Position numbers and translations under genes: made by a program | The notes under the pieces: model-generated | Seen by the model: only the letters and a program-made list of their open reading frames with translations | Database searches by the model: none | What the model was told of the DNA's origin: nothing | DNA from: Fimbriosthenelais zetlandica | Taxonomy: Eukaryota | Length of the DNA: 64,000 nucleotides | Reading direction: 5' to 3' | Assembly: GCA_977030845.1 (NCBI GenBank) | Contig: OZ365116.1 | Location: 20,274,001-20,338,000 of the forward strand | Shown: positions 112 through 46,247 of the stretch, piece by piece | How positions within the stretch are numbered: position 1 is the stretch's first letter | Layout: every line of letters starts with the position of its first letter

Positions 112-317
112 CTTTTCTACAGCCTCGTGCATGGAGAGTCTGCCCTCCTTGACTAGCAGCATGAGCTCTATCCTGTCCTCGTCAGGCATGGTGATTTCAC
201 TAGCATTCAGATCTCCCTCGTACTGTTTGTATACATACTTTCTAGGCGGCTTCTTCCTGAACAGTCTTCCTAGTGTTAAACCCTTCTTTCTCAAGTCTAT
301 TTCACCCAAGGGATATT
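112..317 (-). CDS. SASH1: Exon 6 (YPLGEIDLRKKG...ASEITMPDEDRIELMLLVKEGRLSMHEAVEK), phase 1-0; gene continues beyond the left edge
   Basis: Acceptor ccttgttcttacag, donor AAG|GTGCGT. Matches recalled human SASH1 [32 protein letters not shown]. Confidence 0.92.
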
Positions 318-1225
318 CTGTAAGAACAAGGAGAAACAAAGAGATCAATGAAACTCAAATACATGTACTGACTAGTAAATGCATGAGCTGCTTTCTAGAG
401 ACATTATAGAACACATTGAAAACATTTCCATTCCTACACAAGGTGGCTGGTTATTCGTGGAAGTAATCTGAACTATAAAATATGTAAAGGGAAGTCCCGG
501 GTGGACTATTCTGTCTAGTCTAGTGCTGACTGTGGGTGAGATTTTCTCACTGGGAATATTCTGACTATATTTTTGATATAATCCATGAGCTAGACTGCCA
601 TCTCGGTCAATAAGGCATCTCTAGATATATTCGCAGCAGAAAATATTCACAGTTCTACTATATATGGGAATTCTCTTATAAAAATCTCCACTATATTCCT
701 ACATAACCGCAGTGTAGTTTTTAGAAAGAAATACATATATGAAATGAAAACATATTTTTAAAGCCCAGATATGAGGTACAAGAGATGGATGTCCTCTACA
801 GTGCTTTAGGTAGCGTACATTAAGATTCCATTAATCTTATTAGGGACGTCCACATGGACACTGCATTAGGAGCACATCAATATAACAAAGAGAGACAAGA
901 ATACAATGTCAAATAGATCCTTACATTCTAGAAAACTGGAGAATTGTCTCTTTTTATTGCTACAAAACTATCATACATTTCAGATTCTATTGCCTGTCAT
1001 TGCCAAGCTACTGCCTCCAACAAAGTTTCTCCAATTTAATTGGTAGCATTGTTTGGTTTGCATAAGCCCGTGTTAATGGAAGTAACAGAATTGGGAATCG
1101 ATCAAATGATTTGATAAATTCAGGGATCCATCAATAACAATAATTCCCACTTCACATTGTTCCGTCCTATCACCGGAACCCACCCCTCAACTCCCCTCCA
1201 ACCCCATCCCCATCTACATTGTCAA

Positions 1226-1243
1226 CCCCCCCCCCCCCCCCCC
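1226..1243. repeat. C18 homopolymer
   Basis: Direct reading. Confidence 0.9.
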
Positions 1244-3478
1244 AACCCACACTCTAAGCACGGACTTGATTCGCTAGTAATCAATCCTCGTCACTCACCC
1301 GGTGCTTTGCTGGAGAATTGAAGCTCCTTCCTCTTCACCAATAAAAGGGACATTTTTAAGGGACGAGCAGCTCATTGCCATGCATTAGAGGGACTGGGTG
1401 AGCTTTGAAGGGGAATCTCTCTGCTTTCCTTTGATATAGAAAGGTTTCACTTTGCTTATTCAGACTCACACTGAGGGCTAGCCATAGCAGCAGTAGCTCA
1501 TATGAGAAAAGAACGACAGGCCATGCATGTTTTATGTCAATCAGATTCCCCATGAGTTTATTCCCACGAAAAAAACACAAGGCTTGTTCAGGAGTGACTA
1601 TCACATCGTCCACTATATCTTCTACTCTTTTTTCATATATTTGGTTCTATTTTCTCTATAAATAGACAGGAAAAGGTCAATATATAATCCACTCTTGCTG
1701 AGGTGGAAACCAGTCTAAAAGGATCTTTGCCCTTTTCATATATTCCTGATGATTATGAAGGAAGGAAAGCCAGCCATCAGGTCTAATATAAGTTAATTCA
1801 TATTGCAAAGTGGTAATGTTCCCAGTTCTCATTATTTCTCGGGGGAGGGTCTAACTCAGTTATGAGATTGAACCAGGCTCCAGACCTCTGCTACGCGGAA
1901 ACTATACACGGTTTAAGTCAAAGCCTTTCAGGGAACAGAGAAAGTATTTATTATCTATGTTCACCACTGACTTTTCATTACTTGTCAGCATTATACTACT
2001 GTATAAGAAGCAGGTGTTCTATAGATCAGTACTGAAATGCATGTGAAAGGTTTTAATTAACGGAGTTAAATGTATAAATGAAGCTGGGGCAGGAATCTAG
2101 TCTAATATGAGGAGTTTTCTTATCGTTCAATTACACGGTCTGGAGAGTGGAAATTCAATCGCCTCACACTAATCCCACTCCGCTTTATCAAGCCCGGAGA
2201 GGGAAGTAAAAAAGTGATGTAATTGCTAGAAAAAAAGACAGTGAATTGAGGCCTAAATCAATAGTGGGTCCTGTGACTCATTATCTACGTTACCAACAAT
2301 CAGAAGCTGACATTCTTAATGGTTTAATAAACACTGCCATACTTCATCACAACCCAGCCAGGCATCATGGTGATTATCCAGTCTCCATCATCCAGCCCTG
2401 GTCAATAGAGTGTGAAATTAAATCACCAGTTATCTAATACAGCTTACATTTCCTTTGGAATTGAAAAAAGAAAAAATAAACTCAGAGAAAGTATCTATAC
2501 TGATAAATGTTTAAATAAAACGTAATAAATTGTCAGCAAAAATACTTGGATGTTAAAGAACACGAGTGTTTCATTTTCACAAAAACTGCAATCGCCAAGT
2601 AAATACAGACTGAGTGACCTTTGGAGGAACAGGGAAAGAATCTTTAAACTTAATGGTCACTCTTATTTCAATCTGAGCACCAAAAGGCAAGCTTTTAAAC
2701 AGTGGTAATTTAAACTTTTGAAAGATGTAAAGTGTTCGTGAGGAAAAGCAATAGAAGTTCATTTTAAAGCAGCTCGCCCTCAGTGGGCATAGCTCTCCAA
2801 TATAGTGCACACATTTCCTTTGTTCCTTGAGTGCATTTTAAAATCTCAATCAAGTTGTAGAGTCATAATGGTTCGTTTTTAAACTATTCCCAGTAATTTG
2901 ATTACTAAATTATTAACCACAGAATGCATGTTTTAGGAAGGCAGCTAGATATATGATTTGCTGAATGGAGGTTCCAAAAAAAGATCATTTTGCAGAAGGA
3001 ATAATGTTTCATGGACAAGGACAGTTTTCTCTCCACTGATTGATAGAGTGCAGTAATAGTGATTTAAGAAGAAATATTGTAATGCTCCTTGGCTAACCAT
3101 GCACACACTGGTCACAAACATCAGCAATAAAATGCTGACTTTTATCAAATTTTCCTGCAGCCTGCCGCCCACAGAATGGATGGAAGGAGAGGGATAATGA
3201 ATTTCACATTATCAAATTTCAAAAGCACCGTCTGAGAGCATTTTGTTTTTTCCGCTTAAATTGAAAATGCAGTGCCTCTAAATATTGTATTGAATATTTG
3301 ATTGGATTTCAAGTTGGAGTTAAATTTAAGAATGTTTCAGTCACGCACGAGGTGTAATGTGACTTAAACTTGTTGGATTTAAAGTGCTTGTCCATGCGTC
3401 AGCTTATCAATGGTCATTTTAAAGGATTGTGTGGCTTCAGTTCATGGTCAATTCTTATATATTCTTATCAGTCCTTAC

Positions 3479-3528
3479 CTATAGGTCCTTCCTCACTGTT
3501 CTGTCGTGCAGGGGGTAACAAAGGTGAC
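3479..3528 (-). CDS. SASH1: Exon 5 (SPLLPPARQNSEEGPI), phase 2-1
   Basis: Strong acceptor ttcctttttctttgtccag, donor TAG|GTAAGG, 50 nt. Supplies exactly the phase 2 to 1 shift needed between exons 4 and 6. NSEE resembles recalled SASH1 NSED. Confidence 0.82.
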
Positions 3529-18690: not shown

Positions 18691-18795
18691 AGGAGGACAT
18701 GAAGGTAGGGGAGGAGGGACACTACGGTTAGCCTGACCATAAACACTAAACATCCGGCATGGTTCTATCTCTCCATTCTCACTATCTCTCTCGGG
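18691..18795 (-). CDS. SASH1: Exon 3 (PERDSENGEIEPCRMFSVYGQANRSVPPPLPSCPP), phase 0-0
   Basis: Acceptor tttattgcag, donor CCT|GTAAGT, 105 nt open, phase-compatible with exon 2. No homology recognised. Confidence 0.82.
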
Positions 18796-18953: not shown

Positions 18954-19088
18954 GGATGAGTCGTGACCATTGGAGGTGATGTATGATTCCTGTATTTCCA
19001 GCAGTCGTAGGAAGACGTCCTGACTATGTGTATTGAGGTCCTCAGCATACTTAAAGGAGAGCAGCTCCAGGTTCTGACTGGAATCACT
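18954..19088 (-). CDS. SASH1: Exon 2 of SAMD5-SASH1-like gene (SDSSQNLELLSFKYAEDLNTHSQDVFLRLLEIQESYITSNGHDSS), phase 0-0
   Basis: Acceptor ttttattttcag, donor TCC|GTAAGT, 135 nt open. Aligns ungapped to recalled human SASH1 [32 protein letters not shown]. Confidence 0.9.
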
Positions 19089-22000: not shown

Positions 22001-23762
22001 CATTTGGCATTTCTTTTCCACCTCTCCTACACGGCCCACTTTACAGTCAGGAGGAAGCATGAGGTCTGAGTGGCCCTGGTCCAAGGAACAGCAAAGGGTG
22101 GAGACTTGGACCAGTTGCTGGTTGACCAAATGATATAGTTGGGGTGTATTGGGCCCCATGTCCAGGTTCTGCATATATATCAAATATATTTTATCAAGTA
22201 TATGCTTGAGGAAGCTATTCAAGTTCAAATGTGAAACCGGGTACCTATGTTATTTCATATGAGAACATCCATACCACTTTAAAATGTCCTGTACAGTACA
22301 CAGAGACATGGCTAAGATCGCTTAATGTGAGATAATTGCAAAAGAAAATGGCGTACTCCCAAAATGGGAAGAAACCAAGGAGACTTCATCCATTGAAGCA
22401 CAGGGTCTGATCACTGATCCCTGCTGGATCCTTGAGAGGTCTGGGGATTGACTGAAGGCAGTCAGGACCTGACATGAGAGAGGTGAAGGCATTGAGGGGG
22501 AAAAGGACGAGGTCTATAAGTAATCAGGAGAGCAGGTTCCTGCCTTCTATAAGACCCTCGTACTAGAGCAGAGAGGTAGTTGCTCAGAGAGACAGGCCAG
22601 ACATGACAGAGGGGAAGGACAGGATCAGTTCACCCAACAAATAACGCACTAATTGTGGGTTTGATGGAAAGCAAACAAACCGTAATAAGCAACGCGTCAA
22701 AACTCAAGATGCTGATGGAGAAATAGTGAAGGGCTGGAGGTTTTGGCAATCTCTTAGTCGGGCAAATTGAATTTCTCTGGTTCTTTAGCTGGCGGGTCAA
22801 TATTTTCGAGTTCAAATTGTACTTGCTGTTCACCATGACTGAAATTAAAATGCCATTTGAATTTTAAATATTGAACTGTATAGATAAGTATGTTTCATTC
22901 ATCTGAAAAAGTCATCCTTTAATCTTCCTTTCGTTTGACGGAGGCAAATGTTACATGCATTAAAACAGGAGATATTAATTCATTGATAGGATTGATCATA
23001 TCTTCCTCCGACGAAGAGAAAGGCTTTTCCAATTCTAATTGTAAGACAATTTATCATAAAGGTTGCTTGAAATCTCCTGAACTGAATCTTTATGGAAGTT
23101 TCTGTGTAATGAATAGAACAATTTGCTTAACAATGGCCAGACAGCCATCACTTCCAGCTGAGTGGAAAAGTAGCTTAACCAGTGCAAAATGTTTAAGTCT
23201 TAAATGCTTGAGTGCACCACTCAATCCAGATCTCCTGCTCATCCCACGAGGAAAAGTGACATTTAGCTGTTCAATCTCTTAAAAGATTGACCAGGGAACG
23301 TCCAAGCAGGATTGAGAAAAGTACTTGTTCTTTTGAAGATGACAGGCAAGTTCTTGGGTTCATTCTCTTTATGTCTCCTCTCAATTACACAAATAACACT
23401 CTACAGCATTGTAGCCTCGGTTTCTGGGCTCAGCCTCGATCTGATGCGCATCTACAGGAACCGGAAGTGGATCCCAAGACGTCACCTCCAGGGATCAGGA
23501 GGAAGGAACCCAGAAGAGGGATTGACTAAGGCACTTCTCCCTCAAGAGGGGAGAAAGCTGGGCCCAGGGGAAGGTTTTTCACTGAAGCAGAGCTCAGACT
23601 GAGAAGATCTTGGCATGGTAACACTGGCACATTGCAGGCCTTGATTTTCTCTCCTTTTGAAAGACATAAAGAGCGACTTTTTTCACCAGCTTGGGATGAA
23701 TAGGCAAATCTGGGTGGATCCAGGGAGAGGAGACAGGGTCAGAAAAGAAGTCGAGTTGACCC

Positions 23763-26700: not shown

Positions 26701-29280
26701 GTACAGGAAGAAAGAAGACGGAGTAGCACAGGTTGTTTCATGTTTCATTTTTCAAGTGCTTCAAACTCTCTACAAAACAAAACGCTGGCATTCATCTGAA
26801 TATACAGAGATATACTCCTACAATGTATGGTCTATCTCCCTTCATATAAGCCCCGGAGATAGTGTACAGTGCAACCTTTATATTCACAAAATAAGATAGG
26901 TGGGCTAGAAAAAAGTACAAGGTCTCCAGGACCTTATATATAACTATTTCATTAAGACTAATACTTGCTGCCATGGCCAATAAGTCGAGGGATGCATTAA
27001 AAGTTGGCTAACCTACTTCATTTTCCTGAAAGCTGGGATCCTGGATTTTGTCAGGAGATAATAAGATAAACAGAAATGGCTAGGGATAAGAAAAAGCGCA
27101 TGTTCATGAAGTCCAATTCCAGCTCGAAGCATTTACAATATTGGTAATAGGCTGGGAATTGAATTGTGCAGCAGGCTCGTATATGAAGGTTTTAAGCTTA
27201 ATATACTGGTTCCATTACACCTCCTGCCCTCCCAGCTAAAGCACTAATGTGTGGGTCTGCTCCTAGGTTAAAAGAGTATATAAACTGGTGGCAAAAGCTA
27301 GCCAGGGATGCTACACAATGAGAGGTGGGGAGAATATACTGACAACTATGTCCAACAGTCCTCCAAATTATTCGCAACCCTTTGTCAAATATGAACAAAG
27401 GTATAATTTAGGAAGTATTTTGCAGTGAAACACAAAAAAAATTAAATAATTATTGCGAATATAGGTCAAAGCTCAGATTCTGAGCAATAAATCTTGATTC
27501 GTTGTGTTTTGAAGCCAGCATCACCAGGTGTTCTCAGTCAGTCACACCTCCATTTCCCTACTTGTCACTTCTTTCACGCTTCCAATATCAATGGTTAATA
27601 CCACACTTGATGCCTGACAGACCCTGCTAGAGCTGCTCTCTGAACTGAGAGGAAGTGAGCAGGAGGATGAGGGGAAGTAGGCAGAGAGGACGAGCGAAGA
27701 CGGATGGGAACCAGGGGTGAGTATCATCAACAAAATGACATAATGCTGCACCTCATATTGCTGCTATAGTCTTCTAATGAATCCTTCCCCCATCCAGAAC
27801 TTCTTTATGCAAACTAAATATCCTATTATGTGGGAAATTAATTTATGATAACATACGAAAATTATACGGAATAACAGTCGCTATATAGGACTTATTTAGG
27901 TAATAAAATAATCTGGAATGCACACTGATTTTTGAATCCAGCCCTGGGATTGAGTGTGCCTGATACAGACATGCTTTGATGGAGGCCAGGTTAAAGGTGA
28001 AGGCTGACATGTAGTCATCCTTACTCATTCATCACGGCGCCGCTTTGATCCCTCTACACTATACCTCCTACAACCCAGCCTCTTCCTCCTATTTCTCTCA
28101 CTCCTTGCCCACTAATAGGGCGTTTACCAGGGGACATATTTATAGAATCACAGTACTTATGACTTGGGGTACTGGTCAAATGAGTCTCATAATATAACCT
28201 GGAGCCCTTGGTGAAGTATTTACTCCACTCCCCTGGCAGAAAAAAGGACGGGTCCTCCCTTGGTAACTCCAGTCTGAGTCACTCTCACTGGCCCTGTAAC
28301 ATATGAGCCAGTCCTACTGGTATCAAAGTGGGAGGGTTCACCAATGTCACCAGCACCCCTCACATCAAAGCCAGGGCTACTACACTCCCTGCCCCAGCTG
28401 TCCTCTGTCACTATTCACATTCACCAGTACCTCCTTCCCCTTCCCCTCCACATTCACCCCAACCAATCCCTGGAGACATCTAAGGTCTTACGCTATAGTT
28501 AATTTCCCTGATGTACTAACTGTACTTTCAAGACTTTGCTCTTGTCACAGACTTTATCTTAATAGAAGACCAACAAATCACACTTTGGTCAGATTGATAC
28601 AAAAATGTCTGTAAATGTGACTGACAATGTGACTGCCCATTTTAGGGAGGTGACAAACGGGGGGATGGCTCCCAAACATTCATGAGATGGGAGGAACTTT
28701 CGGGCAGGGAATGGGAGATTTGATCTACAAAAGAAAGCATGGGTAGCACATACTTAATGGAGTTCAGCGTCATGTGTAAAATTTTACAATGAAACGTTTT
28801 CAGGATCATGAGTCCAGACTTGATGATACACTTGAAAGATTGGAGACCTAATCGGTAGGACATCCATGCAAAGTGAGAAAATTTTAAGGCTGAGTTATTT
28901 GGTGAGAGGATCTCTAGACAGCTGCATCACAGTGGAGGGATTTTAATCGAGTGCTCCTTGTTAGGATGTGTCAGTGACTGAAGAGGAAAACCTCCACTTC
29001 CCCACCTAATCGTGTGGGAACAACAGTCCTCATCCAAGCTTCAATTGATTCCCTTCCTAAACTTGTCAGCGCCCGATCCTGCCCATCGCCAGCTCATCAC
29101 AGGATGCCTTGATATTGTTCCCCAACTTTTTCTCGCTTTATTTCTCTTTTTCACCAGCCAGAACTCTTTTGACAAAACCACCCTGTAGTAATTGGAGCCT
29201 CTCGGAGGTGGCAGTGGTAATTGATGCTCTGTTTGGGGTTTTTAGGCCAAGGTTGGCACTTTCAAAGCCAGCAGACGACA

Positions 29281-29430
29281 CACACGTGTGTCCCTAACCC
29301 ATTGGCTGTGCAGTTGTCGTCTGCATCCTGTCACGTGCCTTATGACGTCATGAGCGGCAGACGTCAGGCATATGACGTGACGCGCGTGTGGCAGAGCGTT
29401 GCTGTGTTGTGACGCGCGTCGACGCGTGGT
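29281..29430. promoter_or_regulatory. CpG-dense CRE/E-box cluster in intron 1
   Basis: CACGTG x2, ATTGG, TGACGTCA, GACGTCA, TGACGTGA and GACGCGCGTC within 150 bp. Confidence 0.5.
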
Positions 29431-32400
29431 GGGCTTAGTTATTTATTCACGGCCACCGTGGAAGCTCCTTTCATCACTGATCAATACATAAGTCGAACAA
29501 ATAAACGGGTCTGGTTTTATTTCAGAGATGAGGGAATGGGAGGAGGGGACGCTCAGGAGGAGGTCGAGGTGAGGTCCATGGGGGTCTAACCACACTCCAC
29601 ATCATCCATGTTGGTGGCCTTGTGTGACCTCAATGAAAACGACCTACAGCTATTATTAAAACCATCGAGAAACTCTTGCCAGTATTTGATAGATTTTAAA
29701 GCATTTGAATATGATTGAGGCATCTTGGATTTATACCTGTTTACAATGACAAATCATGCTAAATCAACAAGGGTCCAAAAACTGTATTCAATTCCCAAGG
29801 CTATTCATAATTGACTACAAGCATCAATGGGAAAATAATTCACCATCTAGACTTTTAAAGCAGTCATTCAATAACATTAAAGTATTGTTATGACATGGGA
29901 TCAAATCAGCAAAAAAATCCATGGATTCACCTTCACCCCAAAAAGGTTCATGAATTTTTAAAATGTCCATGCCATGATGTTCCTGCCATTCATCTTGTCA
30001 TGCCATGCCTCACTACCCACTTTTCAAGCCATTTGAAGCCTGCGTGACTCAGAATTGACTTTTTCTTAATCAACAGAGAAAAAAAGAGACGCAACGTTTT
30101 GATTATAAATACTTCAAACTGAAAGAGGGGCCTTGTGGAGAGACTCAAACCTGTAGGTCGATACTTTAGTTTCATATGAGTCAATTGGAGGGAATTTTTA
30201 AGTTATTCTTCGCCTCTAAGAGATTGTTACGCGTGCCATGGAGAATAAAGCAGGCAGTAGTAGAGATTGTATGTGGAGGGCTCCGGGCACCTACTCCGGC
30301 CTGTCTATGTACATACAGGTGATGATGGGTGTAAGAGGAATGTGATGCACTCATCAGTGACTAAAACCTGCCCCAAGCCCAGCTGAAAGCCAACCGACAA
30401 CGTTACAATATAGTGCCAGCTGAAGGCTCAATACTTATACAAGCGGGGTGCATGAATGAATGAAAAGTACCTCCTAATCTACCTACAATATTTATATTGA
30501 ACGCGTTAAGATGGCCTTGGCATGCCTGTTAATCATTCACAGCAGGGGGCACATAATTATTACGATAGGAACATTACGTAAAATGTGTACATCCCCTCCT
30601 AAAGTAATAAACAATGAGAACTCCCATAGATGGGAAACTAACACGTGCGCCAGGAAGAGAAAATCCTCAGCCCAGATATGCCAGCAAGCCTCGTAAGAAA
30701 TTAGCCTCAGTCACCCACTGTAAATGAATGTTTTTATCCCATTAAACGTTATCTAAGCTCCATGAAGGACCTGTAGAAACTAGCTGTATATCATCCTTAG
30801 AGTAAATGACTAACATGGCTTTGTATCAGCAAAAGTGGAGATGATTTCAGCATTGTGAGGAAAGAATTTCTCCATTCATAGGTCCATTAGGAAGATAAAT
30901 TCTCGATATACAATTTTGAACCTATAGTAACTGTGAACCACAGCATTTGAAATGCCATATGAATCATAAGTTGGTTCAGAATATGTATGTATACAAGTAC
31001 ATCAGATTGCTTCTTAAGGACATGTCAGACTCGTTAGTTTGGTGGTTGGTACACGTACATGATTGAAGATGGATGGTATAGTATGTACATGAACACTGTT
31101 ATCTGAGGGAGAAGTATGGCTGCTATCATATGGTGGAAGGAGATATGACAACAAGCGTGTAGTATAGGAGTGAGACAGCTGATCAAACACTTCCTCTCCC
31201 CTCCACCATCTCCTCTCACAGTCTTATCTCACGAGACCAGATATCCCGGCACATTGTTAACATGTACGATACATGTACACATCTCTATGTGAAATCTCCG
31301 AGAAACAAATTCCATCACAACGTGAGAAAAAGACCAGGCAACCATATAAAACAGATAAATACAGTAATACATCCGCAAGGCCTCTGCAACTATTCTTGTA
31401 ACTAATTTTCAGTAGAGAGAATAATGTAGAGAGATTAGAATTTAACGTGACGTTTCTTTCAGGGCTAGTTAGAGGTACAAGTCTATACTCTATGCCAACA
31501 TGTTTTCAATGTAACACATCAAAGGCTTCCAGCACTGAGCCAGTCTAAACATAAGGTGGGTGTGAGTATAGGCGGGCACGAGTGGGCCATGTTTGGCCTC
31601 CGTTCCCATTGATTTCCTTTCTTAAATGTGACGCGCCTGCGCACACGCTCCTGTCACATGACATCCGGACTGAGCACGGCATGACGGGAGATCACATGTT
31701 ATTCCACCTCAATCTGCTCCTCATTAGCTGGCAACTTTTTAAACTGACATTGATGAATATGCTAAAAATTAAAGCGAGATCTCTCCACTGGGGGTTTCTC
31801 ATCTAGTTCTAGGCATATTTCCATTTCGATTAATGTAGAAATACAACTTGATATGGGAGTTTTTATGCGTGCTTTACTGAGGAGTTTCTTATTTTGAATA
31901 TGACTTATTTTCATATTTCTATGCACCAACCATGTTCATGTGAACCTACCGCAGTATTCACTCATGCTTAAGAGGAACACACACACATACACCATATGCC
32001 TGAATGTTTCAGCCATTAGTAAGTGCACCCTGCTGGGCTGGAAGGAAAACAATCTTTTAAGATCAAAGCGTTGAGAACACCAGGCACGCTAACTGCAAAT
32101 CGATCTGCTTATTACTCTATGTTTCAACCACAGTCTCAGGATGAAGGTTCGTGCAATCATTCTTACCACTACAGACTCACAGACATGATGGAATAGCTTC
32201 AAGCCACCAAAAATCAATACTCTGTGATCGACGTTTTAGAGACTGTAAAAAGAAATAGGAGCTAAAAAATACTGTCCTAAATCTTCATAAACCATGCTTC
32301 TGAGCATCCTAATTTAGAGCAGCCAGGAAGCACTCATTTGGTTTTGATTATAGACCATGTTTAATGGTCGGCATGGCGTGGCCAGGTTCAGGCCCAATTT

Positions 32401-33442
32401 TTCTTGGAGGTTCAAGTTTCTATTGGAAGCACGTGTTGAACGTGTGACCAGGGCCAAGAACACAGGGACTAGTCATTTGGCTTGCCATAACATACTTATC
32501 TTGTGTACACCCAGAAAAGTAAACTCCCCCACTACTAGAGAAATCTATATTTTAAGCGTGTATAAAATGTAGTCAAACTAGTGAAACACAAATTGGGAGG
32601 ACCTACATGGACTGTATAAGAGGATCAAGCACTAATAATCAATGTAATGTATTCGGCTGTTCCGTAGGAAAATCCTTACAGCTTTTAAGCATTCGCATAC
32701 ATTTCCATATTCCTCCACTTCCCTTTTATGCACATACTTGGTAAGTCCATACAATCGAAGAAATATTCTTCCCATTTGAGCTCTTTTCCCCGCAATTGCT
32801 TAAATCATGAGCAGAACTTTCTGCCGTGCTCCTGTTTGTAATTCAGCTGGTGGCATGGAAATCGGGGCAGACCTCAAGGATACTCTATTTAGTAACTCTA
32901 CTATCCTTGCAGACCTCCTGAATATGTCCGTCTATGACCACCATAAAGGGTTCTATAAGCCTTGAGGGAGTCTTTATTTTTCCACAGTGACATTAACAAT
33001 TCATGAAATACTCCAGACATAGCCAAGTAACAGTCACTAGGCCCTTGACCCCCGATCCTCAAGCCCCATCACACATGTAGGGTTCTCGGGCATTTTGTGA
33101 GAGCGCTATTAAAGGTACAGACCTTTACAATGTTTTCCCCAGGTTTTAGAGAATGGCTCTCAGTGGATCAAATCACAACCATCAGGTTGAATGGTGAGGG
33201 ATCCTAACTTTGACAACCCTCAGTTGACCCTCCCTGAAAATGCGTTCTGAAAACAAACAAAAACACAGATGGTGTTCCAATGGCTCACTTTTCGAAACCA
33301 CAAAACATGCAGAACTTTGCACGCTTTCAGGAACCAAAAACTCAGAACCACCGTTGGGCTTTAAAGGAAAAAGAAAACCGGTCCCTAAATGAAATTACTG
33401 GTAAATGTATTCGCTTTTGCCCTTCGAACCCGAGCGAGATAT

Positions 33443-33470
33443 CGCCCCCTGGTGGTGACTGAATTTGCAT
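33443..33470 (-). promoter_or_regulatory. CTCF-consensus motif next to an octamer motif
   Basis: Minus strand CCACCAGGGGGCG at 33455-33443; ATTTGCAT at 33463-33470. Confidence 0.5.
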
Positions 33471-36400
33471 ATGGCAGGGCAGTGAGGGGTAACATAAAAC
33501 AGATTCCTGAGAGTGTAATTCAATTAGAAGTAGAAGAGACCCACAAGCATATTGCCCAACTCTGGATCACTTAGTAACCACCAAAAGAGTCTATGGGTCT
33601 TCCTCGATTCGTGACTAAATTTAGTTTAAAAAAAATATTATCCGTTCCCTTTCATTGAAGGTCTTTCCATAGAGAGGAGAGGTTTTGTCTTAGAGGCTTT
33701 ATATTGCATGAAGATACATCAGAGTGAGATCTGACATGTTCCAGACCAGGCCTTTATGTCGGATCCAGGCTCCGTGGCAGCTGTTTCCTCCCTGCCACTC
33801 TTCCACATATATACCCTGCGCCAAGGCCTTCACTACTGGCACATCAAAAGCTACAAACCAAACCTAATGAACTTTCTTCTTGAATCTAATGGGTCACAGA
33901 GTATATTTCCATCCTCTCACCCACCCATCCACCCACCACCACCACTTTCCTCTTCTCAACCCTTCTACATAAATCACTCAACGAACCCCACAAAGTAAAG
34001 CCTTCAACTAAGAACTATCTATAGACTTACAATTAGGTTTCACTGTCAGCAGTTTTTAAACAGTCTTCTTAAAATCTGTGGCACGTTCATTACAGATTAA
34101 AACATTATTGTACAGCTTAAATATCGAGATCCAAAACGATGCACCTTTAGTCAATTCACGTTATATGGAGTGCCAGTAAAAGGTATGGTTATAAAAGAGC
34201 TGCCATGGGGAGATAAATGACTACAATCAGCGAGTCATACCCATACATCTCTGTCATATGGTATATATATAGTTATATGTCATACATATTCATCACCGTG
34301 TCTAACATACGTGCCTGGAGTGTAAACAGGACAGGTGAGTGTCCAGTCATGGATTATAAGTTGGGTATATATTATATTCATCATGTACAGCTTGTTGACC
34401 AGTCCTCCTGTACACCACTCTCATACACCCACCACAAACATCTAACCTCATTCACCAAAACTTATCCTCAATGCCCTCTTTCAAAAATTCTCCTACGTCT
34501 TAATTCTTTCCAATATTTTTTCAATTTTAGTTTTAAACTACGTCAATTCATCGCATTCTCCACAAGAGAGTACCTGTATACTCAAATTATATTCTACCCT
34601 ACCGACGAAAGCAATTTATTTTATTTTAATCTTTTTTCTCACTTTTCTTCCGTTTCCTCAGCCACCTTCCCTTCACACAAAATAATGACCCTCTCCATCA
34701 CCTGGAAGAGCCAGAGCGCCCAGAGAGAGCATGGCGCCCCCCGCCTCTCAATAGCCACTAACTGCTAATTAAGACCCACAAGATGAGAGGGTTTTTACCC
34801 ACCAAATTAGGACCCTCCTGCTGACCCATGTTTTGGACAGAACAAAAAGCCCTTCTGGGAAATTTTTGTGTGAAGGTACTGGCCACTGCCAACCCATTTC
34901 TTTTCAAACAATTAAATTTCCACGCATTCAGTCATGGGCAGTTTATAAGGGAGTCTTTCTTCAAAAAAGAAACTTTTATAATTAAAAGTTTTATACAGTC
35001 ATGTCTGTATAGACTCCATACTAACTGGTGAAGCTAAAAATAAGTGGCTATAAATATGCAAGAAATAATGGTACGTATTGGTCAGGGGTCTAAGAGGTGA
35101 GCGGTGAGGTCCTGTCATTACTGTCCACTTATCTTACTGGACGTTAGTGGTCATCCGCCTCATTATCTCATACACCTGAACTGACCACTACACCGAGCCA
35201 TCGACCCACCAGAAAATAACTCTGCTTCCTCTTACATGCTTTTGCTTTTTGTTGGTGCGGTTGACTTCTTATTATTTGACTTTTCTATGGCCAGAAATGC
35301 CACATGTAGTCAATGACCTACAGCAGTGTGCTGAATGTTCGAAAATATATTTCTATTCAGCAGTATTCTTTCCTATATTTTATATATTAGAAGGAAGTTC
35401 AGATAAATATCCATTGATGTCAAAGACATCAAAATTATAATTATGATTTACAAAGTATTGGCAAGATTAAATCTCACAAGAGACAATAATTGTTAGGAAG
35501 ATGAGTTGAACCTATTTTCCACTGTATTGTTGGGCATTTCAGAGACTATCCCCAATAGGAAACTAAACCAAACACTTTCATTTTTGTTGAAGGGCTTCAT
35601 TGAGATAACAGGTCTGATTCAGCAATGGGCAACAACAAAGCAGGTGGAACCCCCCGCAGAGAACTAGAAAACAGGGCCCAATAATATCACAGTGGGGGGA
35701 ACAATGGCAAGGGACAGTGTGCGCCATAATTACAGATGACAATTGTAATAAAAAGTTGGAAATCAAAGCTGCGAATGATACCAATCTATAGTAAGAGCAC
35801 CTGGCAGGCACGTAGCGCGGTCCCAGGCTGGCCCTGCTTAATTAATGGCCCTAAGGGCCGGAGGGCATTTTATGGTGACACATATGTTGACAGGGGCCAT
35901 TGCCATTCAGCCCCCTTTCCTCATTCCCCATTCAAGTTTCTCCATTTGATCCTGCAGTGGTTTCCCCAAGGACCATAGGGTAGCGAGGCACCACTTGCAG
36001 TGGACATTATTTGCTGACTGTAGCCTCGGGTATTGTTCATTACGTAACAAAGGATTCACTTCTATCACTGCCGCCTACAAGGGTCCATCCCTTTTCCTTT
36101 GCTTTCAGTCTCTCTCTCAGTCGCCAGTGAAATAGATACTCTTCTACACTGGTTATATAACCCTGGTCATTAAAAGTAATGATCTAATTAAAGTAAGCTA
36201 TTCAAGGGTAGAAGAAACTCAATCTGATAAAGCACAGGGACTTCTGGTCGTTTCATCAGACCAAAAACACAATTTTCACAGTTCTTTGATCGTTTATTGG
36301 GAGTGTGAACACCCCCAGCCTCCTCTATTATTACATACACCCACGATGAACACTTCTGATAAAATTGAGGACATTTTTTGTGATGCATTATTCCAGGATA

Positions 36401-39400
36401 GTGATGAGAGGAGAGTGGTGTCCGGCCCGGGGCACCCTCACACATCTCTCCCTCCACTTGTAATTGCTCCCCTCCCCCAAGCAATGGCACACAAAGTCCC
36501 ACATTACTGCCTTGTTCACCCACGCCCTGGGCGCCCACAAATATTGGCTTTCACAGCATATTGCTTATTCATGGAAAGGAAAAAACTCTCCAACAATTCA
36601 ACCACAACTTCCACAACAACACTTTTAGCCAGTGTGTCCCTGTTTGGTAGTGACTTCAGGCTGCAGTTTCTTAAAATAAACACTTTTGAAATAAAAATTC
36701 ACCAAATGTCAATTTATATGAATTGTGAACTCATTTTTAGAGGATTTCTATGCTCTTTTCTGTGCAAATGAAATTCATTGTAATATATTTGCTCCCCCTA
36801 GGCTAGAGAGTGAGGTGATGAAGTGGAGAATTGCAGCCTGGCTTCTTTTTTCTGGCCTGAAGATTTTTGATGAGTGTTTAATTTGTCCAATCTCATCTAA
36901 TCTCGCCTAATCTCTCACCTCATTAAACTCTCCACTCGTTATTAATTCAAGACGTTTACACTGCAAACCCTGCCCAACATCCATTCATCAAGAAAGCGGG
37001 TCAACACAACGCCTTTGCTGGTAATAATCAATGACCGTAAAGAAATCCACCATCATATTAGCATGGTAACATGCTTTGTCATGATGAAATATAATATTAT
37101 TCACTCTTCAAAATATCATGTCAATTTTATAGTTATTTAAACCCTCTACAATGACTACAATTAACTTACTGGATAAAATGAAGGATAGTCGTATAAATAA
37201 ATTGAAGGGTGAAATGAAAACTTAAGTAGGCTATACAAAAGTCTAAAGGTCTTAGAGTACGTATAGGCCTTGTCCATGAGACTCAAGGGCAAAGGTTCGT
37301 AAGGGCAAAGAAAAGGAGACTATAAGTGGAGTCCATAAATGCTAGAGGCATGCATGAAATGTATGAAGAGTCAGACTCCAAACCATTAGTGAAACATTAA
37401 AGTTTTCTAAAACTCATATAAATGAGTGAGTTCAGAGTATATGAGAGTTGAGGTAAATCTAGATCGTAGAAGCCATCATTCCAGAATGTTAGTAGAGGGT
37501 TCTTACTGACATGAGTGTGATGCTTGTAATTATGTCACTAGCAGAAAAGTTGATTGCATGAATGAATATGGCAGATATAGATCTAAACTTTCCACTAGGG
37601 AGCTTAATACAACTCTTCAAGAGGGCCCCACCCGCTTTCCACCCTCCAAGGAGGTGCCCTTTAAATATAAAGGAATACAAGAGTTTTGAATTCCCAGCTG
37701 ACATAGAGAAAAATATCCCCGAATAAGAGATGAGAATCTAATAACTTAAAGAGCCTAGAGCTAATCTATAACAAGGCCTTATATAACGCAGATGTAATGT
37801 AATGGGTGAGCTGCGCTAGAGGCTATGTATTAAACAATCCATTTATATGTATGATACATTACATATAAGTCAATGATGTTCAACAATAGGCGAGCATAAA
37901 ATAGATACACTCTTTCACTGACAACAATACCCATCCTAAGCTGTAAAGACAGCTGGTTTGGCCTTCATATCATATTCATATATCAGTTCATTTTTGTCTG
38001 TGCATTTAGAATGAAACACAGAGGAGGAATACTGAGGGACAAATGGATACTGACTCTTACATCATTATTCATATGAATGTCTTTGCGTTTATTCTAAGGG
38101 GAGATTCAAAAAGACTTTGAGGAATCTGTATAGCTGTGGCTTTATCATCTCAACAGGGATGTTTATGTTATGAGAGATGAGATGACAAACTGCCATTTCC
38201 TGCCTAATGCAGCGTCCTTCTGGCAGGAATGAAGGAGTGAGGGTGTGTGGTTGGGGGTGGGGGCAGAAGCCAAATCAGAAGCAGGAAGTCTGAGGCAGAA
38301 GCAACAATCTTTGGTACATGACATTTGATTGTTCCAAATAACCAAAAACTCTACCTCTATAAGGCTTTTTCTCAACATTAGGAGGGGTATAGATACCCTT
38401 GTCTGTTAGGTTCCTTCTCTCTCTCTTCGACATAAACAAAACTAGGTTTGGATTTCAGGCAACGGTGGACAAAGTGGACTTTTTTGGCAGGGAGCAACAT
38501 GATTCCAGACCAAAGGGTAAACTAAGTCGAGAACTAAAGGCCAGCATAGCATGAAAACGTGTAGTGGAACTCTGCAGACATAACTTGAAGAGATATCACT
38601 CACCATTGAGAGAAAGGTCAGTTCTCTCTGACTGGCAAGATTCTATATTTGCACTGATAAATACCTGATAACTGTAATAAAGCAAGTGCACGAGTGTCCC
38701 CTTTATGAGGTAGACACTGGGACCTGCCTTGAAGGACAGAATCCTCTGTAATATGTATGAGTGACAAATGTTGATGGTTTATATTTCACGTGTTGGGACA
38801 TAATCCACTCCTCTAGGGTGGAGAAAATATATCTCACAGCTTCCGGCTCTCTACAGCAGTCCCACCCCCTGTAAAAGGTGTCAGTCACCTCCACCCCCTC
38901 CTTCTCTCATCCCCGCCCGCCAGGGGAACCACTATCTCCCGTCCATGTGCTGGGATAAAGCATGTAACATTATAGGTCGTTCACACCATGGCGATTAGCC
39001 GACCAGGGCTCTAATCCCTAATATTATATTAATATCCGTTTGCAGAACGAATCTGCCATAACACGCAGGAAAAATATGTATAAAAAGCTGAGGCTGATTG
39101 ATGCAATAGCATTGAAGGAAAGAAGATGGAATGAGGGAAGTTAAGGCTGTGAAGGCTGATTGGCAAAGGCACAATAAATTCAGCCCACATCACGAAGGCA
39201 AATACAGAAATAGACCGAAATGATGCAATTATCACATAATAGAATCCATCTATAACAACATTGGCGAGTTGGGGAACAATTTGTAAGAAAGCAAACTAAT
39301 TTATTTCAGCTCAGGAATCGTGAATCTTTGATTTGGCCGCCACACAATCAGGGTAATTAGCAGATAGCGCCTGTCCTGCATGCAGATCATCAAGTTTTTT

Positions 39401-42400
39401 CAATTCTGGGCTTCTTTTCTTATCAGGGAGAGGGTGGGAGGCGCGTGGTGTGATCGGACGGGGGTGATTCTTGTCAAGATAATAGATTCATGATGGAAAA
39501 GGAACAGATTCCAACCACGTGCACTGATTACAATTAGGTGAGAAGCTCAACTTGAAGGGAGTTTGTGGGAGGAGAATTCCTCCCCAATTAAATGTGTGTG
39601 GGCATGTCTTGGATTAGGTTTGTCACTGACCAATCTGAAGACTTTATTGGAAAATGTATATATATCTGAATAAAGTGTATACGACTGCTAAAATGGTTGA
39701 CATTTTATATAATAACTTCAATTAAGAATGTGTCAGCAAACACACATCCAATCCTGACGCCTGACTGTGCACCATGGCATGGATGGATTTGTGATTTTAG
39801 TCTGGATAATACATTCATTATTCTGAAGCAGCAGAATCCTAGTCTTCCTCCTCATTTATCCTAATTAGAAGAGCGCACTGGTACATGTGAGAGGAGGAAT
39901 GAACAAGAGAAGGAAGACGTGGAATCTATCCACTTGATTAAATTGGGAGAAGGTACAAATCTGATTGAATTACATAACTAATTACAGGCTTCTTCAATCC
40001 CATATAACTCAATTTTTCTACCTGGAATACCTAATAATTTTCCAGAAGATCAACTTTGAGGTTCCTTCAGGCATGAGTCTCATATAAATGGGTGGACATA
40101 GTGAGCTGTATATATGAGTGAACCAGTAGTGAGGGAGCAGCTCAGAGAGATGAAGGAGCAACTGGCGACTGCATGTGGAGGTCAATCAATGAGCTCTATA
40201 CCCATTGTGTTTGAGTGACTAAACATAGAAGCTGTACCTATTGACTCCGACCGTAACTATAGGGTCAGACATAATGGGTCCCGACTCTGTCATATTAGAC
40301 ACTTAACCCATGTTTTGTGTAGGACTCTGGACATTCCCAGCCCAGATGATAGAGGACTACTGGGTAATATCTGTGATAAGACAACGGATATAGTTAACAT
40401 CGGATATAGTCCATCAACTTTCCCATGATCCCTATACTATCTTCCCATCATCAATAAATCAGTTCTGGACATTGTCCTTTGTGGATATGAATGTACCAAG
40501 TGCACTATCTTAGTATAAGGATCTAGAACTGATTCATAAGGTAAAATATCCAGCGTGTTATTAGAGCAATCAATAATGTTGCTTGGTGTGGGGAATACAC
40601 CAGTGGTGGTGATCAGTAGTGATGAATGTCTCATTGATTGTTCCACCATGAGGGCATGTAGTGGAGGAGACAATGTGAGCTGTCTCATCAGTTAATAATC
40701 AATAACACCCAGTTCTACACCTCCCTATTACAAGGTCCTGCTGCGCCCACTCACAAAACACTTCACCTCTCACCAAAACCTGACAGTCTATTCACCCAGA
40801 GTGATTGAAAAACCAAACGGAGGAGGACTACATGCCAGTGCCTTTAAGTCAGCAATTGACTGAGAGAGTGGGCAACATGATAGAGAACAAGGCAGTAGCC
40901 AGTGTGTATTGGTCTGGAGTCAGCATGCCTGCGGGCCGTGGACAACTTCCTTCTGATCGGGTCAATAAGAAGGGAGGAGGAGTTGGGGTCGCTGGCTGCT
41001 CCCACCCGCGGCCTTCTTTAGACGCCCCATTAGGCACAGGAGTGGGCAGTAGAGGGCAGGCCTGTGTAACCCGGAAGTGTGGGGTGGATGTCCTGGAGGC
41101 TGAGGCTGCAGGACGTACAAAACACTGGTGCTACATTACCAATACTCGCCCAGCTCCCGATAGGCGGCGCCCCAGCCGTTATTGCTTCTATCCAGTCAAT
41201 ATTTGCCAGTAATCAGAAGATGGCATCGGGCAACAGGCCACATCTCGCCTTTTATCGTCAAGTCTCGCAGTTGGCTTGCAAGCGGGAGATTGGTTCTGTG
41301 ATCGGCTCATTGGCCCCTAAAGCCCAGATCAGACTCGCGCGCTTCTACCAATGGCACATGATACTTTAAAATGCCCTCATATCTTCAGGATCGCAGCGTG
41401 CAGGAACTGTGGCCCTGCTGATATTTTATTCAATTTGGCCTGATTTATTGCTCCAATGGCCAAGGTTGTACATTCCATTTGGTGGGCATAGCTCATCAGC
41501 ATAATAATTGGCAAGTAGACTAGAATGCCCTTCTCAGAAAACTCTTTTGAGGTGATCATTGCAAGACAAATACTCATCCAAAATTCACAAGCGATGGTTC
41601 ATAGGTGGCCATGGCTATGATGACTGAAATGAACCTATAGGTCTAGGTCCTATATTGGAAAGGAATAATGGAAACTATCCAAAACATTTTGTATATGGGA
41701 AGTGGCAAGTCTATAGTTAGGAGGTGGGACGTACAAGCCTGCATGTTAAAGGGTCATATATAGCAGGACTTGACGCTGGGTTATGGTGAATCATGGCGGT
41801 GATAATTAACCTGATCAGGCACAACTGACGTGCCATACTTAATCACCAGATTACCTCCAACTGATAGTCCGGATTAAAGCCTCTAGTAATGCATTGTTCT
41901 ATGTATGGGAGCAACTGATGGATTAGATGACCTCAAACATATGGCAATGTCAGTGGGTGGTTTGAAAGCACCAAAATACATGCAGTCATATTTTAATGTT
42001 CCACTTCATCACATTCCAATCCATATAACCCACCATATATATCCTGCCTAGAGATAAAAAAATAAAGAGGCATGGTAAATCAGAACTATCTTAAAACCAT
42101 TTCTTATTGAGTAAAACAAAAAAGCAGTTGGTAAGAAAGAATGGGTATATGGTTTTTATACCACAAAAGAAGTTGTTCTGAATCTGTGCCATCCATTAAG
42201 CTTAGCGTGACAATGCCACACTGTATTATATGAATGAGTGGTCACGGAGGATCATATAGTCAATGTCTGTCCTCATAACTCCACATAAATACTATAGCGG
42301 CCTCATTTCTGAGGACATGATTCACAAACGCCACTTTCCATATACTACTTTCACTATACTACTCACAATCATCATTCAATAAAGACACCGCAAGTTATTA

Positions 42401-44133
42401 AACTTCCTTCAGGAAAGAATATCTTATGGGGCAAGAAATCACCTAAAATACCACCACATGGGCTACAGGGACACAAGGAAACTTATTTGTTCAGGAGGAC
42501 TGGCTAGAAAGAGATGTCTGGGTGTTCTCCAATCGATAACATTGAGTGCTAAGCAGCAGTCAGCGCCCAAAGCTGGAGTGCACACAAAGTAATGAATAGA
42601 TAACATTAGTGTCAACTCATGTGGACATGCTGATTGCTACATTAATCATATCTATCATCTCTTCTCCTTTCCCACCCATTTTACAACGACACCCATGCAT
42701 GTACACTGAAGGCGTTTAACACTTCAACTGGTAACCAGCCCTGGGCAAGCCTGCATGTCCCATTCACAATCATCATAGCAAAAATATAACGGGCTTCTTA
42801 TTTAGGTTGACCGAGACTTATCGATAATACCTCATCTGTTCAATTTCAGCCAAGCGCCAAATCTCATGACAAATCTATGCAAAGAGGGTTCCATAAAAAT
42901 GATTTAAGATCAACTGGAATGGAGTTATTGATTTTTTGTTCCTAGCAATTGGGGGTTGGAGTGAAAGGGTCAGTTGAATTAGGGCCCTTTTATGGGGGGG
43001 GGAGCAAAGGGGGAAGAGGGGGTTGGTGGGGTATAGTGGGGAAGGAAGTAGGCTGAATGAGTAGTTAGGGTTAACCTAGTGCAATGAAGATTTTGATGCT
43101 GGGGGTCAAGTGACGTCATCGAATACTTTGACAAAGCAAATATCCTGTGTGTCCATTCGAGTGACGGGCGACACACGCAAGGGCTTAATGCAATGATTCA
43201 ATGGTAATGTAGCTAATGCTTACTGGATCCCTTAATGTTACATTCACACCCAGTCAAATTATAGAAGGCTGTCAGGCAGTCATTGCATTTCCTTCAGTCA
43301 GTGACAGTCCTACCACCAGCTGCTTCATTCCATTAAGGCACCATCAACTAATCCACAACCTGTACACAATGCTTCATTCAAATACATTCAACTCACCAGT
43401 CTTATTGCCACTGAATGCAATCATATCATGCTTTGATATCACTACAATGAAACAACTGTATAGGCCTACCATTCCCTCACCACTCCCCTATAATATTAAC
43501 TCCATATACACGATGGAAGAACCACTAAAATCCGCCTGGGAAGTAGGCCTATAGACTACAGTAGCAGGTTTTAAAATCAAAGCCTTGAGCAAGTCTAAAG
43601 AGACAGAACGAGAGTAGTAGGTAAATCCTCCGTCTGCCTCTATCTTTAAGTAGCAGACACCAGGGATATAATGAGCCACCATTTATGAGAAGAGGGATGA
43701 TCCCTGGTGATGAGTCAATGGGTGGAGATACGTGTCAGGGGGATATACATAATACGGTCAGATGAATACCGTATTCCCTCCACCCACCGCCTGGCTATTT
43801 TCAAAAGTTTAGGGGCTAAATACATCACCATGTTAAATCCTGGGCAACATATTTGTCAGGTACATGTGCCTTACAATGACATACCAACACTTGAGAGGGG
43901 AGACAGCCCAGGGATTGAACTGCCAACACTTACTAAATCATTAGATGACCTTCCATCCTTTCCCTATATATAGCTAAGTTATTTGAAAACAGGTGTTTAG
44001 ACAAGGCAATACGGTAGGGGTAAGTGGTGAACCTTGGGACGAGTGGTCAGTGTCAGTGGGCATGCAATCTGTGATAACCTGATATCATGAGGACCACGCC
44101 TGGCTGTCAGGGTGAATCAGGGGGCCTGCTGAT

Positions 44134-44148
44134 GGGGGGGGGGGGGGG
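44134..44148. repeat. G15 homopolymer
   Basis: Direct reading. Confidence 0.9.
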
Positions 44149-44280
44149 AGGCTGGCTGAGCTGACCTCATCATAATCAATATTCAATAAGGCAGATTGTC
44201 TCCCTTCTCTAACCGATAAAGACGAGGGACAGTCGTCAAAAAAGGCCCTGTATATAAAAGTGAGGTGTGGGTGTATGGAA

Positions 44281-44490
44281 TACAGTGCTTCTCCCCTAAA
44301 GCGATCAACTTTGGGACTGACCAATGAGAGTTTTTACTCTCGTTGGACTGACCAAGCTTCTATAAGGTGGTGGTCGTTTCAGTGGGGTATTATAAACATA
44401 TACGGTATATATATAAGAAACAGGGAACCTGACACCATGGTCCGTTCAAGGGGTGGTCGGTTTAGCGGACCACCATATGTAAATGTACCG
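44281..44490. mobile_element. Possible degenerate Tc1/mariner-type MITE relic
   Basis: Starts TACAGTG and carries GCGATCAAC, GGTGGTCG (x2) and GGACCACC motifs resembling TA-CAGT MITEs. No matching right terminus was found. Confidence 0.3.
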
Positions 44491-45224
44491 GTATATAATT
44501 AGTATGTATCAAGGGAACTAATGGCTAAAGATTATTTGCAATTACACTATATCAAAATGATTTTATCGGACCATTTCTGCCTGTTCAATTATATTATAAA
44601 ACATTCTCATCTGAAATAAATAAAAGCTAAGGGCAATAAAGAAGCCACAAAATTTGAATTAACTGGTTGTTCAAGCATGGAACCAACAGCTTTTGTTAGG
44701 AAAAGGGCTTGTGGTGCTTCATCAAGTGAATTAGGAGTAGTAATGAGTTAATAAGCATATGGGGGCGGGTATCCCCTAGGGACAGATTACAGAAGATAAG
44801 TTCCCACAAGCATGCAACACCCCCATACCCATACTCTCAAAAAAATTGTTCATCATCACTTTTTATCCTAATTAGATAAGACTGGTAATAGTTTTTCCCA
44901 ATTAGGACCTTTTTCTCCAAATGCATGGTTTTAAGATTTGATGTCCACATGGGGATGACCTTTTTTAAATATTACATCAGATAATTCTGAAATTTTAATG
45001 GGATGGCCACAACTTTAAAACTTCACTGTAAACTATGTAGATGAGACAGTAACATTGTAAGGATGGAGATGGGTGATTTGGGGCTCATTAATTTATCTTT
45101 CCTAACAGTCGTCCAAGAATGAAGTGAGACACAATTAATTCTGCTAGAAACCTCAGCTTGAGCCTGGGGCAGATGATGACCTTCAAGAAAGTAGCAGACG
45201 ACATTTAGATCAATATTTACAAAC

Positions 45225-46247
45225 CTTGTTCAGGTATTTCTCCTCGGTAAGAACAATGCTATCCGCCTCCAGCTTATCCCGTACAATAGCCATCAGCTGT
45301 AGGCGGGTAAAGGTCACCAAAGTTTGTTGTCCATCCAGGTGTGGATGGACGGGGTGTGAAACGTTCCTTCCACCAGGGCATGAACCACATGGGGTCATTG
45401 TACTGTTAAAACCCACATCTTCTCCTAGACATGCTTGGCAAGGTGGGAGGGGAAGGGGCACCCCGACCCGACCTGAGTGTATTGACGGGAAACCTCCAAG
45501 GGGAGGCAGTGGAGGTGGAGGGGGAGGAGGTGGTGGTGGGGGTAAAGGTGGCTGGTGAGGGTGAGGAGAGAGAGGGATACTGGAGCTACCCCCTTGAAGA
45601 AGCCCATTACTGAGGGGTACGGGAACTGTCAATGGTCTATGAGTGGGGGAGAGCCAAGCTGGTGTTACATTACCACTACTTGGTTGAGACCCCCCTCCCC
45701 CTCCAGCACAAGGGGATCCAATAGTAGTCTGTGCCACCCCACCTCCATTATAGCCATTCACAACACAGACAGGGGAAATATTGCCTAGAACTGAATTCTC
45801 TACATAGTTAGAATGCACAGGACATCGACTAGGAGAAGTTGTAGCAGCTTGGATTGTGTAATTATCACCACTTCCATGGGGCCCACTTTCAGGGAAGCCG
45901 CCATGGGATGTCCTACCATTGGTGACAATATTGTGGTCATGGTCTAAAGACCTTTGCACATAATGTAATCCACGTGTGGAACCAGTGTATGGCCCTAGGC
46001 CATTGACTCTCTGATATTCAGGGTCCAATGTAAAGTATACAGCAGTGCCTCCATGCTCCCGGAGGTGTTGGACTGCAGCTAGTACTTCCTCCCTGTGATC
46101 AACTCGTAACACTCCAATAGCGTCCAGATCCTCAGCACCAATCTGTTTACATATCTCTAAGTCATCGTACCCATTGTCTAAGAAGGACTGTGTATACTGC
46201 ACCATGTTCAGTGAACGTAGCCAGTTCTCTACTATATTGGCATCCAT
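45225..46247 (-). CDS. SAMD5: Exon 1 of SAMD5-SASH1-like gene: N-terminal SAM domain, long Gly/Pro/Ser-rich linker, SAMD5 C-terminal block (341 codons, phase 0)
   Basis: [46 protein letters not shown] matches the recalled SAMD5 SAM domain. AVYFTLDP and [32 protein letters not shown] match the recalled SAMD5 blocks. Donor AAG|GTTTGT at 45225/45224. Confidence 0.93.

Follow-up and report, generated by a model that had tools for sequence, protein, structure and literature searches.

One minus-strand gene of Fimbriosthenelais zetlandica probably joins a SAMD5-type first exon to SASH1-type exons across an ancestral bilaterian splice

Proteins of the SASH1 family carry a C-terminal helical domain just before SAM2, named SASH1_Homeodomain in Pfam (PF26285). 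A 2026 review calls residues 1092-1170 of human SASH1 a "SAM-like helical bundle" (PMC13467429); it counts the helical bundle beside SAM2 among the open questions, discusses conservation in vertebrate terms and never mentions SAMD5. Here we describe a gene, locus A, in a window of 64,000 nucleotides of the Fimbriosthenelais zetlandica genome (447 Mb), corresponding to positions 20,274,001-20,338,000 of contig OZ365116.1 and without any N. At least the 5' two-thirds of one minus-strand protein-coding gene lie in the window. Its SAMD5-type exon 1 and its SASH1-type exons very probably belong to one gene, and the joint between them is probably a splice of ancestral bilaterian age that vertebrates still keep.

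The same joint is known from human tumors. A transcript linking SAMD5 exon 1 in frame to SASH1 exon 2, the junction modelled at locus A, was found in four of five chordomas without copy-number change (PMC5352057). It recurs in ganglioneuroblastoma (PMC7653769) and in four benign (grade I) meningiomas (PMC6489307), has also been reported in a central nervous system tumor carrying an internal tandem duplication of BCOR (BCOR-ITD), and is listed in most fusion databases (PMC11852724). The junction was confirmed by reverse transcription PCR (RT-PCR) and Sanger sequencing (PMC5352057, PMC7653769). In papers as late as 2026, SAMD5::SASH1 is presented as a fusion that is new and possibly oncogenic, whereas the comparative data suggest a conserved normal splice. 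We found no paper in the literature searched that links this transcript to the ancestry of the gene; public annotation already implies that SAMD5 and SASH1 form one unit, which appears to be unstated in the papers searched.

Four groups of described proteins are close to locus A. First, fused SASH1 isoforms of vertebrates (Sapajus apella X5, P0265; Struthio camelus X6-X9; shark SASH1a X1/X2; Lampetra fluviatilis P0034) share with it an N-terminal SAM of SAMD5 type, a joint at which exon 1 ends ..PY..K in phase 0 and exon 2 starts DGSxGN(I/L), a complete three-helix domain across that joint, and EITMxDEDR downstream. These proteins (~1,100-1,480 amino acids, aa) continue to SPIDER, SH3, SAM1, a second helical domain and SAM2, whereas none of these parts was found at locus A. 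Second, the Shal K+ channel interacting protein (SKIP) of arthropods (Epargyreus X6, Artemia, Drosophila biarmipes X4) also has the N-terminal SAMD5-type SAM and the complete helical domain; unlike locus A, it has an SH3 and, in the scanned Epargyreus and Artemia proteins, a C-terminal SAM. Third, the order of parts at locus A is that of Pomacea canaliculata LOC112565676 (X1-X5, 518-542 aa), Aplysia LOC101859605 (partial) and Octopus "SASH1-like isoform X3": a SAM, a long linker, the three-helix domain, PPLPxCPP and then KKK..GRF(L/F)R..YKQ..EITMSDEDR..VKEGK, all in a short protein with no SH3 or SAM to follow. The molluscan middle exon (S..ERC..L..HL...NY.A.DG) and tail (V.KFEEE..) were not found at locus A. 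Fourth, human SAMD5 (Q5TGI4, 173 aa) has the SAM and the first helix, and its exon 1 ends at the same position as in locus A. Human SAMD5 is annotated with a short terminal exon, whereas the locus A exon has a 240-residue linker and, if this is one gene, continues to SASH1-like exons.

For the helical domain we used an in-house profile made from 12 C-terminal copies (12 species) of the SASH1 helical domain, with no N-terminal copy among them; profile positions below refer to it. The exons and splice signals of locus A are as follows.

45225..46247, minus strand: exon 1, coding part, 341 codons; ATG at 46247; ends ..EEKYLNK in phase 0
46059..46238, minus strand: SAM domain of SAMD5 type, residues 4-63; Pfam SAM_1 E 5.9e-14, SAM_2 E 2.4e-13
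45225..45302, minus strand: first half of the three-helix domain, residues 316-341; profile positions 6-31
45210..45224, minus strand: donor GT (45224-45223) and read-through tail VCKY with its stop, as read in the sequence
19089..45224, minus strand: intron 1, ~26.1 kb; without an open reading frame (ORF) of at least 150 aa with a recognizable product
18954..19088, minus strand: exon 2, 45 codons, phase 0 at both ends, SDSSQNLELLSFKYAEDLNTHSQDVFLRLLEIQ..; acceptor ttttcag, donor gtaagt
18691..18795, minus strand: exon 3, 35 codons, phase 0 at both ends; ends ..RSVPPPLPSCPP; donor GTAAGT
112..317, minus strand: SASH1-type exon, in phase 1, out phase 0; ..KKGLTLGRLFRKKPPRKYVYKQYEGDLNASEITMPDEDRIELMLLVKEGRLSMHEAVEK; donor GT at 111-110

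Exon 1 lies in a full ORF of 345 aa (45210-46247, minus strand, read-through included), and its donor reads AAG/GTTTGT. The N-terminal SAM bears the NGYDDLE(I/V)CKQIG..DLDAIGV signature and shares 62-75% identity with its N-terminal counterpart in SAMD5/SASH1-like proteins, the best named relatives being SAMD5 or SAMD5-like. A low-complexity linker of 240 residues follows, and the exon ends in the SAMD5 manner, in phase 0 after a helix of the form KL..D.I.L...PY..K. Exon 2 opens with SDSSQNLELLSFKYAEDLNTHSQDVF, has no in-frame ATG and carries the second half of the three-helix domain. The exon 3 motif PPLPxCPP is found in the Pomacea, Aplysia and Octopus proteins, and the exon 3 end recurs with an identical donor position in a paralogue, locus B, described below. 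The exon at 317-112 (ASEITMPDEDRIELMLLVKEG, also read as ..GRLFRKKPPRKYVYKQYEGDLNASEITMPDEDRIELMLLVKEGRLSMHEAVEK) resembles SASH1-family proteins. It carries the motif ..EITMxDEDR..LM..VKE.., aligns to shark, lamprey, hemichordate and mollusc SASH1-like proteins, and shares 46-52% identity with the SASH1-like proteins of Pomacea, Aplysia and the hemichordate and 75% with locus B. The donor of this last exon in the window reads GTGCGT, which implies at least one further exon beyond the window.

We assessed the joint of exons 1 and 2 with the profile. Exons 1 and 2 together matched positions 6-60 over residues 316-370, ungapped and at 20.0 bits, and hold a complete three-helix domain (SASH1_Homeodomain); precomputed PF26285 matches are on record for homologues. 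Scored apart, exon 1 gave 7.0 bits (7.7 bits with its read-through) and exon 2 gave 6.2 bits. We also joined exon 1 to each phase-0 acceptor in the remaining window and scored every product (n = 535). Acceptor 19088 ranked first of the 535, with 24.7 bits against a mean of 12.6 (standard deviation 1.4, z ~8). The runner-up, acceptor 41532 at 21.7 bits, was discarded as a hydrophobic chance match. The joined model gave single collinear alignments, from the end of exon 1 through the last exon, to proteins of Argonauta (E 2e-21), Owenia (4e-20), Lampetra (9e-19) and Lingula (4e-17). Read-through at the exon 1 donor would truncate the protein inside the three-helix domain. These comparisons strongly predict the 45225>19088 splice in Fimbriosthenelais zetlandica. 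They also bear out the initial annotation in describing exon 1 as SAMD5-like and ending ..EKYLNK in phase 0, and the two human sequences that it had given, ..PPYSRK at the end of SAMD5 exon 1 and the ungapped SASH1 counterpart of SDSSQNLELL, are both read in a capuchin SASH1 isoform.

Uninterrupted ORFs through the joint, such as spliced complementary DNA (cDNA) would give if the contigs stem from RNA, were found in P0231 and P0016, on Logan contigs of 2.5 and 4.8 kb. P0001 on L020 and the Pomacea Logan contigs (P0386) were dropped as splice evidence, since there the donor is simply read through into the intron. L021 (4,817 nucleotides) is a Logan contig of SRR21676452 with an uninterrupted 1,130-aa ORF in the order SAM, helical domain, SH3, SAM, helical domain; its 3' part holds a short-chain dehydrogenase ORF on the opposite strand, and it may be a chimeric assembly or an overlapping transcript.

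The profile scores of related proteins divide at the same point.

Fused mammal, bird, fish and hemichordate forms: profile positions 5-70 or 5-75, 38-42 bits
Xiphophorus SAMD5: profile positions 5-35, 23.8 bits
Hemichordate form with an alternative first exon: profile positions 30-70, 15.4 bits

In the AlphaFold model of the hemichordate N-terminus, a confident SAM domain is followed by a linker that is disordered over 72-108; one helix (119-133) precedes the joint (145/146) and two (152-163 and 167-188) come after it, with 10-residue block means of 82-96 for the predicted local distance difference test (pLDDT) over 111-180. Exon 1 residues 316-341 correspond to helix 1 of this model. Human SAMD5 (Q5TGI4) aligns with it only to residue 141, and the human AlphaFold DB model matches residues 1-141 at 49% identity. 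The half-domains on either side of the joint mean that the exon boundary cuts a single small fold, which is hard to explain unless the joined transcript was the original product.

To place the locus among known proteins, we searched 1.8 billion representative proteins with exon 1 and found 813 relatives (E <= 0.001), including many proteins of 780-2,240 aa with a matching N-terminus. In a Pfam scan of eight such long proteins, SH3 was present in seven and a second SAM in seven. Fused proteins are annotated in arthropods (scorpion, horseshoe crab, spider, millipede, barnacle, crab, Artemia (SKIP), beetle, wasp, mosquito, Drosophila, butterfly (SKIP)), in lophotrochozoans (scallop, freshwater mussels, cephalopods, annelid, brachiopod, nemertean) and in deuterostomes (hemichordate, lampreys, sharks, teleosts). 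With the SAMD5-like part of the lamprey protein as query, 1,000 long proteins were returned at E <= 1e-12; the 120 listed of these were all named SASH1 isoforms and came from paddlefish, sturgeon, bowfin, characins, frogs, lizards, turtles, many birds and at least six mammals.

The joint itself can be followed within single species. In the capuchin isoform (Sapajus apella X5, P0265), the sequence runs from ..PPYSRK straight into SASH1 exon 2. In Xiphophorus, a 180-aa SAMD5 and a 1,057-aa SASH1 isoform share exon 1 almost residue for residue (starting MCTQGAN and MSQGAN, respectively) and diverge directly after ..APYTHK. In both shark and hemichordate, isoforms that differ in their first exon come together at one exact residue, the start of the shared sequence (DGSKGNIDDL in one of the two), which is the K/SDSSQNLELL position of locus A, ungapped. 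SAMD5 seems to be an alternative first exon that also has an alternative end of its own. The initial annotation had proposed that SAMD5 and SASH1 are halves of one ancestral gene, split when SAMD5 gained a terminal exon and SASH1 an internal promoter. One ancestral unit is upheld by the fused proteins across Bilateria and by the three-helix domain straddling the joint. The split is not a clean one, with SASH1 isoforms bearing SAMD5 exon 1 in mammals and both products in Xiphophorus. Alternative first exons do exist; a hemichordate one bypasses the SAM exon, so an internal promoter may be older than vertebrates.

Two side observations concern the fused vertebrate forms. P0267 (Cervus elaphus) and P0286 (Equus caballus) have an extra 16-residue insert (VSDVFSSLLQGVVICL or similar) lying between ..PPYSRK and the exon 2 sequence, presumably a micro-exon that would interrupt the helical domain. 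In the shark SASH1a isoforms P0036, P0171 and P0173, the SAMD5-like exon ends ..SKLILKMKNKQQRGSKHPSANKK and the profile match starts only at position 22-28; helix 1 may have decayed in sharks.

Most annotated fused proteins come from Gnomon or similar automatic models, and they could be artefacts that merge neighboring genes and have no bearing on ancestry. We regard this as extremely improbable. A profile without N-terminal copies sees the complete domain only in fused forms, exons 1 and 2 agree in phase and spacing across distant phyla, and uninterrupted ORFs span the joint on short contigs. The human junction, moreover, is the one confirmed by RT-PCR and Sanger sequencing.

A second alternative would place two genes in the window: a single-exon SAMD5-like gene ending at the stop at 45210, and a gene resembling the SASH1 N-terminal region with its own promoter and first exon in the 26-kb interval. 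The read-through stop lies just four codons past the donor, short "SAMD5-like" proteins are annotated in many invertebrates, and the hemichordate and shark have alternative first exons. Each of the two products would, however, hold half a three-helix domain, and exon 2 offers no in-frame ATG. Many of the short database proteins are plain ORF calls through the GT into the intron (P0001, P0181, P0386), and the phase and position of the joint are conserved from this genome to mammals. Short and joined forms may also coexist as isoforms, which is compatible with a single gene. We therefore think two separate genes improbable and continue with one gene spanning the joint.

Several observations weigh against this one-gene interpretation. 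The 45225>19088 splice is predicted here by comparing sequences rather than from RNA of the species, a point that also speaks for two genes. One of the Logan contigs that span the joint (L021) also bears an unrelated gene on the opposite strand, and many of the annotated fused proteins are automatic predictions. Downstream of locus A lie unrelated genes on the same strand. The remaining points are parts of the gene that were sought and not found. The initial annotation had counted six phase-consistent exons with 530 uninterrupted codons. Four exons have proper splice signals; the two middle exons (121 bases) needed for the putative total of 530 codons were not found. These middle exons gave no signal in tblastx or blastn of locus A against paralogue B, in regular-expression searches for the molluscan motif, or with a profile of the molluscan middle region. 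By chance, 16,951 open AG/GT-flanked exon pairs totalling 121 bases arise in the interval, so phase consistency there is uninformative. No exon for SH3 or a second SAM was found in the window or 60 kb downstream by tblastn with eight family proteins and the SH3/SAM exons of a third paralogue, locus C. The SH3-then-SAM order of the SLY/SASH family was thus not found at locus A, contrary to the expectation that leftward extension would yield SLY, SH3 and SAM exons. Pfam SPIDER (PF12485) had no match to the last exon (81-aa exon scanned), and a six-frame genome search for SPIDER gave no match, with controls equally silent. SPIDER occupies 513-659 of the lamprey protein, a region far downstream of what locus A covers.

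Missing parts of this kind would also be expected if locus A were a truncated, decaying duplicate of a full SASH1-like gene (B or C), unexpressed or non-functional as a whole; the SH3/SAM exon is not found within 60 kb downstream and the middle exons are not recognizable. The parts that are present argue otherwise. Exon 1 is an intact stretch of 341 codons that shares 74% identity, from end to end, with the intact ORF P0001 of a related species, all checked splice sites and frames are intact, and the last exon is stop-free and 75% identical to its paralogue B counterpart. In addition, this short layout is found in a distinct gene of Pomacea, whose five isoforms measure 518-542 aa. We consider decay very improbable, and the locus A copy appears to be a short form of the family, like the Pomacea LOC112565676 gene.

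Locus A is one of three paralogous loci on the same chromosome and strand, each with a SAMD5-like exon upstream of SASH1-like exons.

Locus A, 20.27-20.32 Mb (window), minus strand: exons 1, 2 and 3 and the SASH1-type exon; SH3/SAM not found
Locus B, 14.16-14.28 Mb, same strand as A: exons 1, 2 and 3, the SASH1-type exon and a C-terminal SAM; SH3 not found
Locus C, 11.03-11.23 Mb, same strand as A: exon 1, a copy of the SASH1-type exon, SH3 and SAM

A whole-genome search found SH3 plus SAM exons solely at locus C and a SAM exon alone at locus B; a search for further copies of exon 2 turned up that of locus B alone. Exon 1 of locus B ends ..LPRQK/GTAGGA in phase 0, the same donor phase as in A, its exon 2 starts in phase 0 with IEVGGKLDELTKKFSSELKTHYHHVLDAL, and its exon 3 ends ..PPPLPSCPP/GTAAGT, as in A. 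The EITM exon of B is 75% identical to that of A, with no stop in A's copy. Locus B (14150001-14290000, L022-L035) also has two large Ser-rich exons and retains the post-SH3 linker ..RPRPKTVDELLARLGIQ despite its undetected SH3. Exon 1 of locus C (L016, 11224323-11227775) is family-like as far as ..DAYGEGKLALTTYPR and then diverges, which suggests an extra intron within what is a single exon 1 in A and B.

The putative 3' end of the gene in locus A gave no match in tblastx with the 3' exons of paralogue B, nor when the V.KFEEE tail was sought as a motif. On the minus strand, some 4.1-5.0 kb ahead of the window (L002), there are three ORF pieces that resemble a small membrane protein (..GALAMRALGYGTLWAIGGVGLLCFGVWKL.., ..LGGVGVVSLAAGFGYALGLAKKK..); a gene at this position limits the room for the 3' end of the locus A gene. 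Upstream of the gene, the neighbors are a minus-strand ORF at 50206-50745 and Pro/Gly/Arg-rich plus-strand ORFs at 54802-57183.

If exon 1 and the SASH1-type exons are one gene, transcription would start upstream of 46247, and exon 1 would encode the SAMD5-type SAM, the long low-complexity linker and helix 1 of the three-helix domain. Removal of the 26-kb intron would bring in exon 2 with the other two helices, completing a fold that neither half would form alone. Later exons would add the PPPLPxCPP motif and then the EITMxDEDR..VKEG motif of the SASH1 N-terminal region. On this model, "SAMD5" would be the ancestral first exon used with its own short ending, and canonical "SASH1" would use another first exon, hence its start in the middle of the domain.

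As a family member the gene is ordinary, and the family is one already modelled in public annotation; for annotation, locus A is to be treated as one gene, not two, of a family with a recognizable layout. For the human counterpart, the SAMD5-SASH1 "fusion" of tumors probably re-uses an ancient normal splice. On balance, we lean towards a further step: that only the SAMD5 exon 1-SASH1 exon 2 transcript makes an intact N-terminal SAM and helical unit, mirroring the C-terminal helical and SAM2 unit, and that this full-length product represents the ancestral protein of Bilateria and continues to be made in normal vertebrate tissues. If true, the recurrent human tumor SAMD5::SASH1 would be a physiological isoform and not a rearrangement. 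A junction kept from invertebrates to mammals argues for a normal splice, and SAMD5::SASH1 calls in tumors should be filtered or read accordingly. For the SASH1 family, the helical bundle gains a second, N-terminal copy, and the usual SASH1 construct begins partway through that copy.

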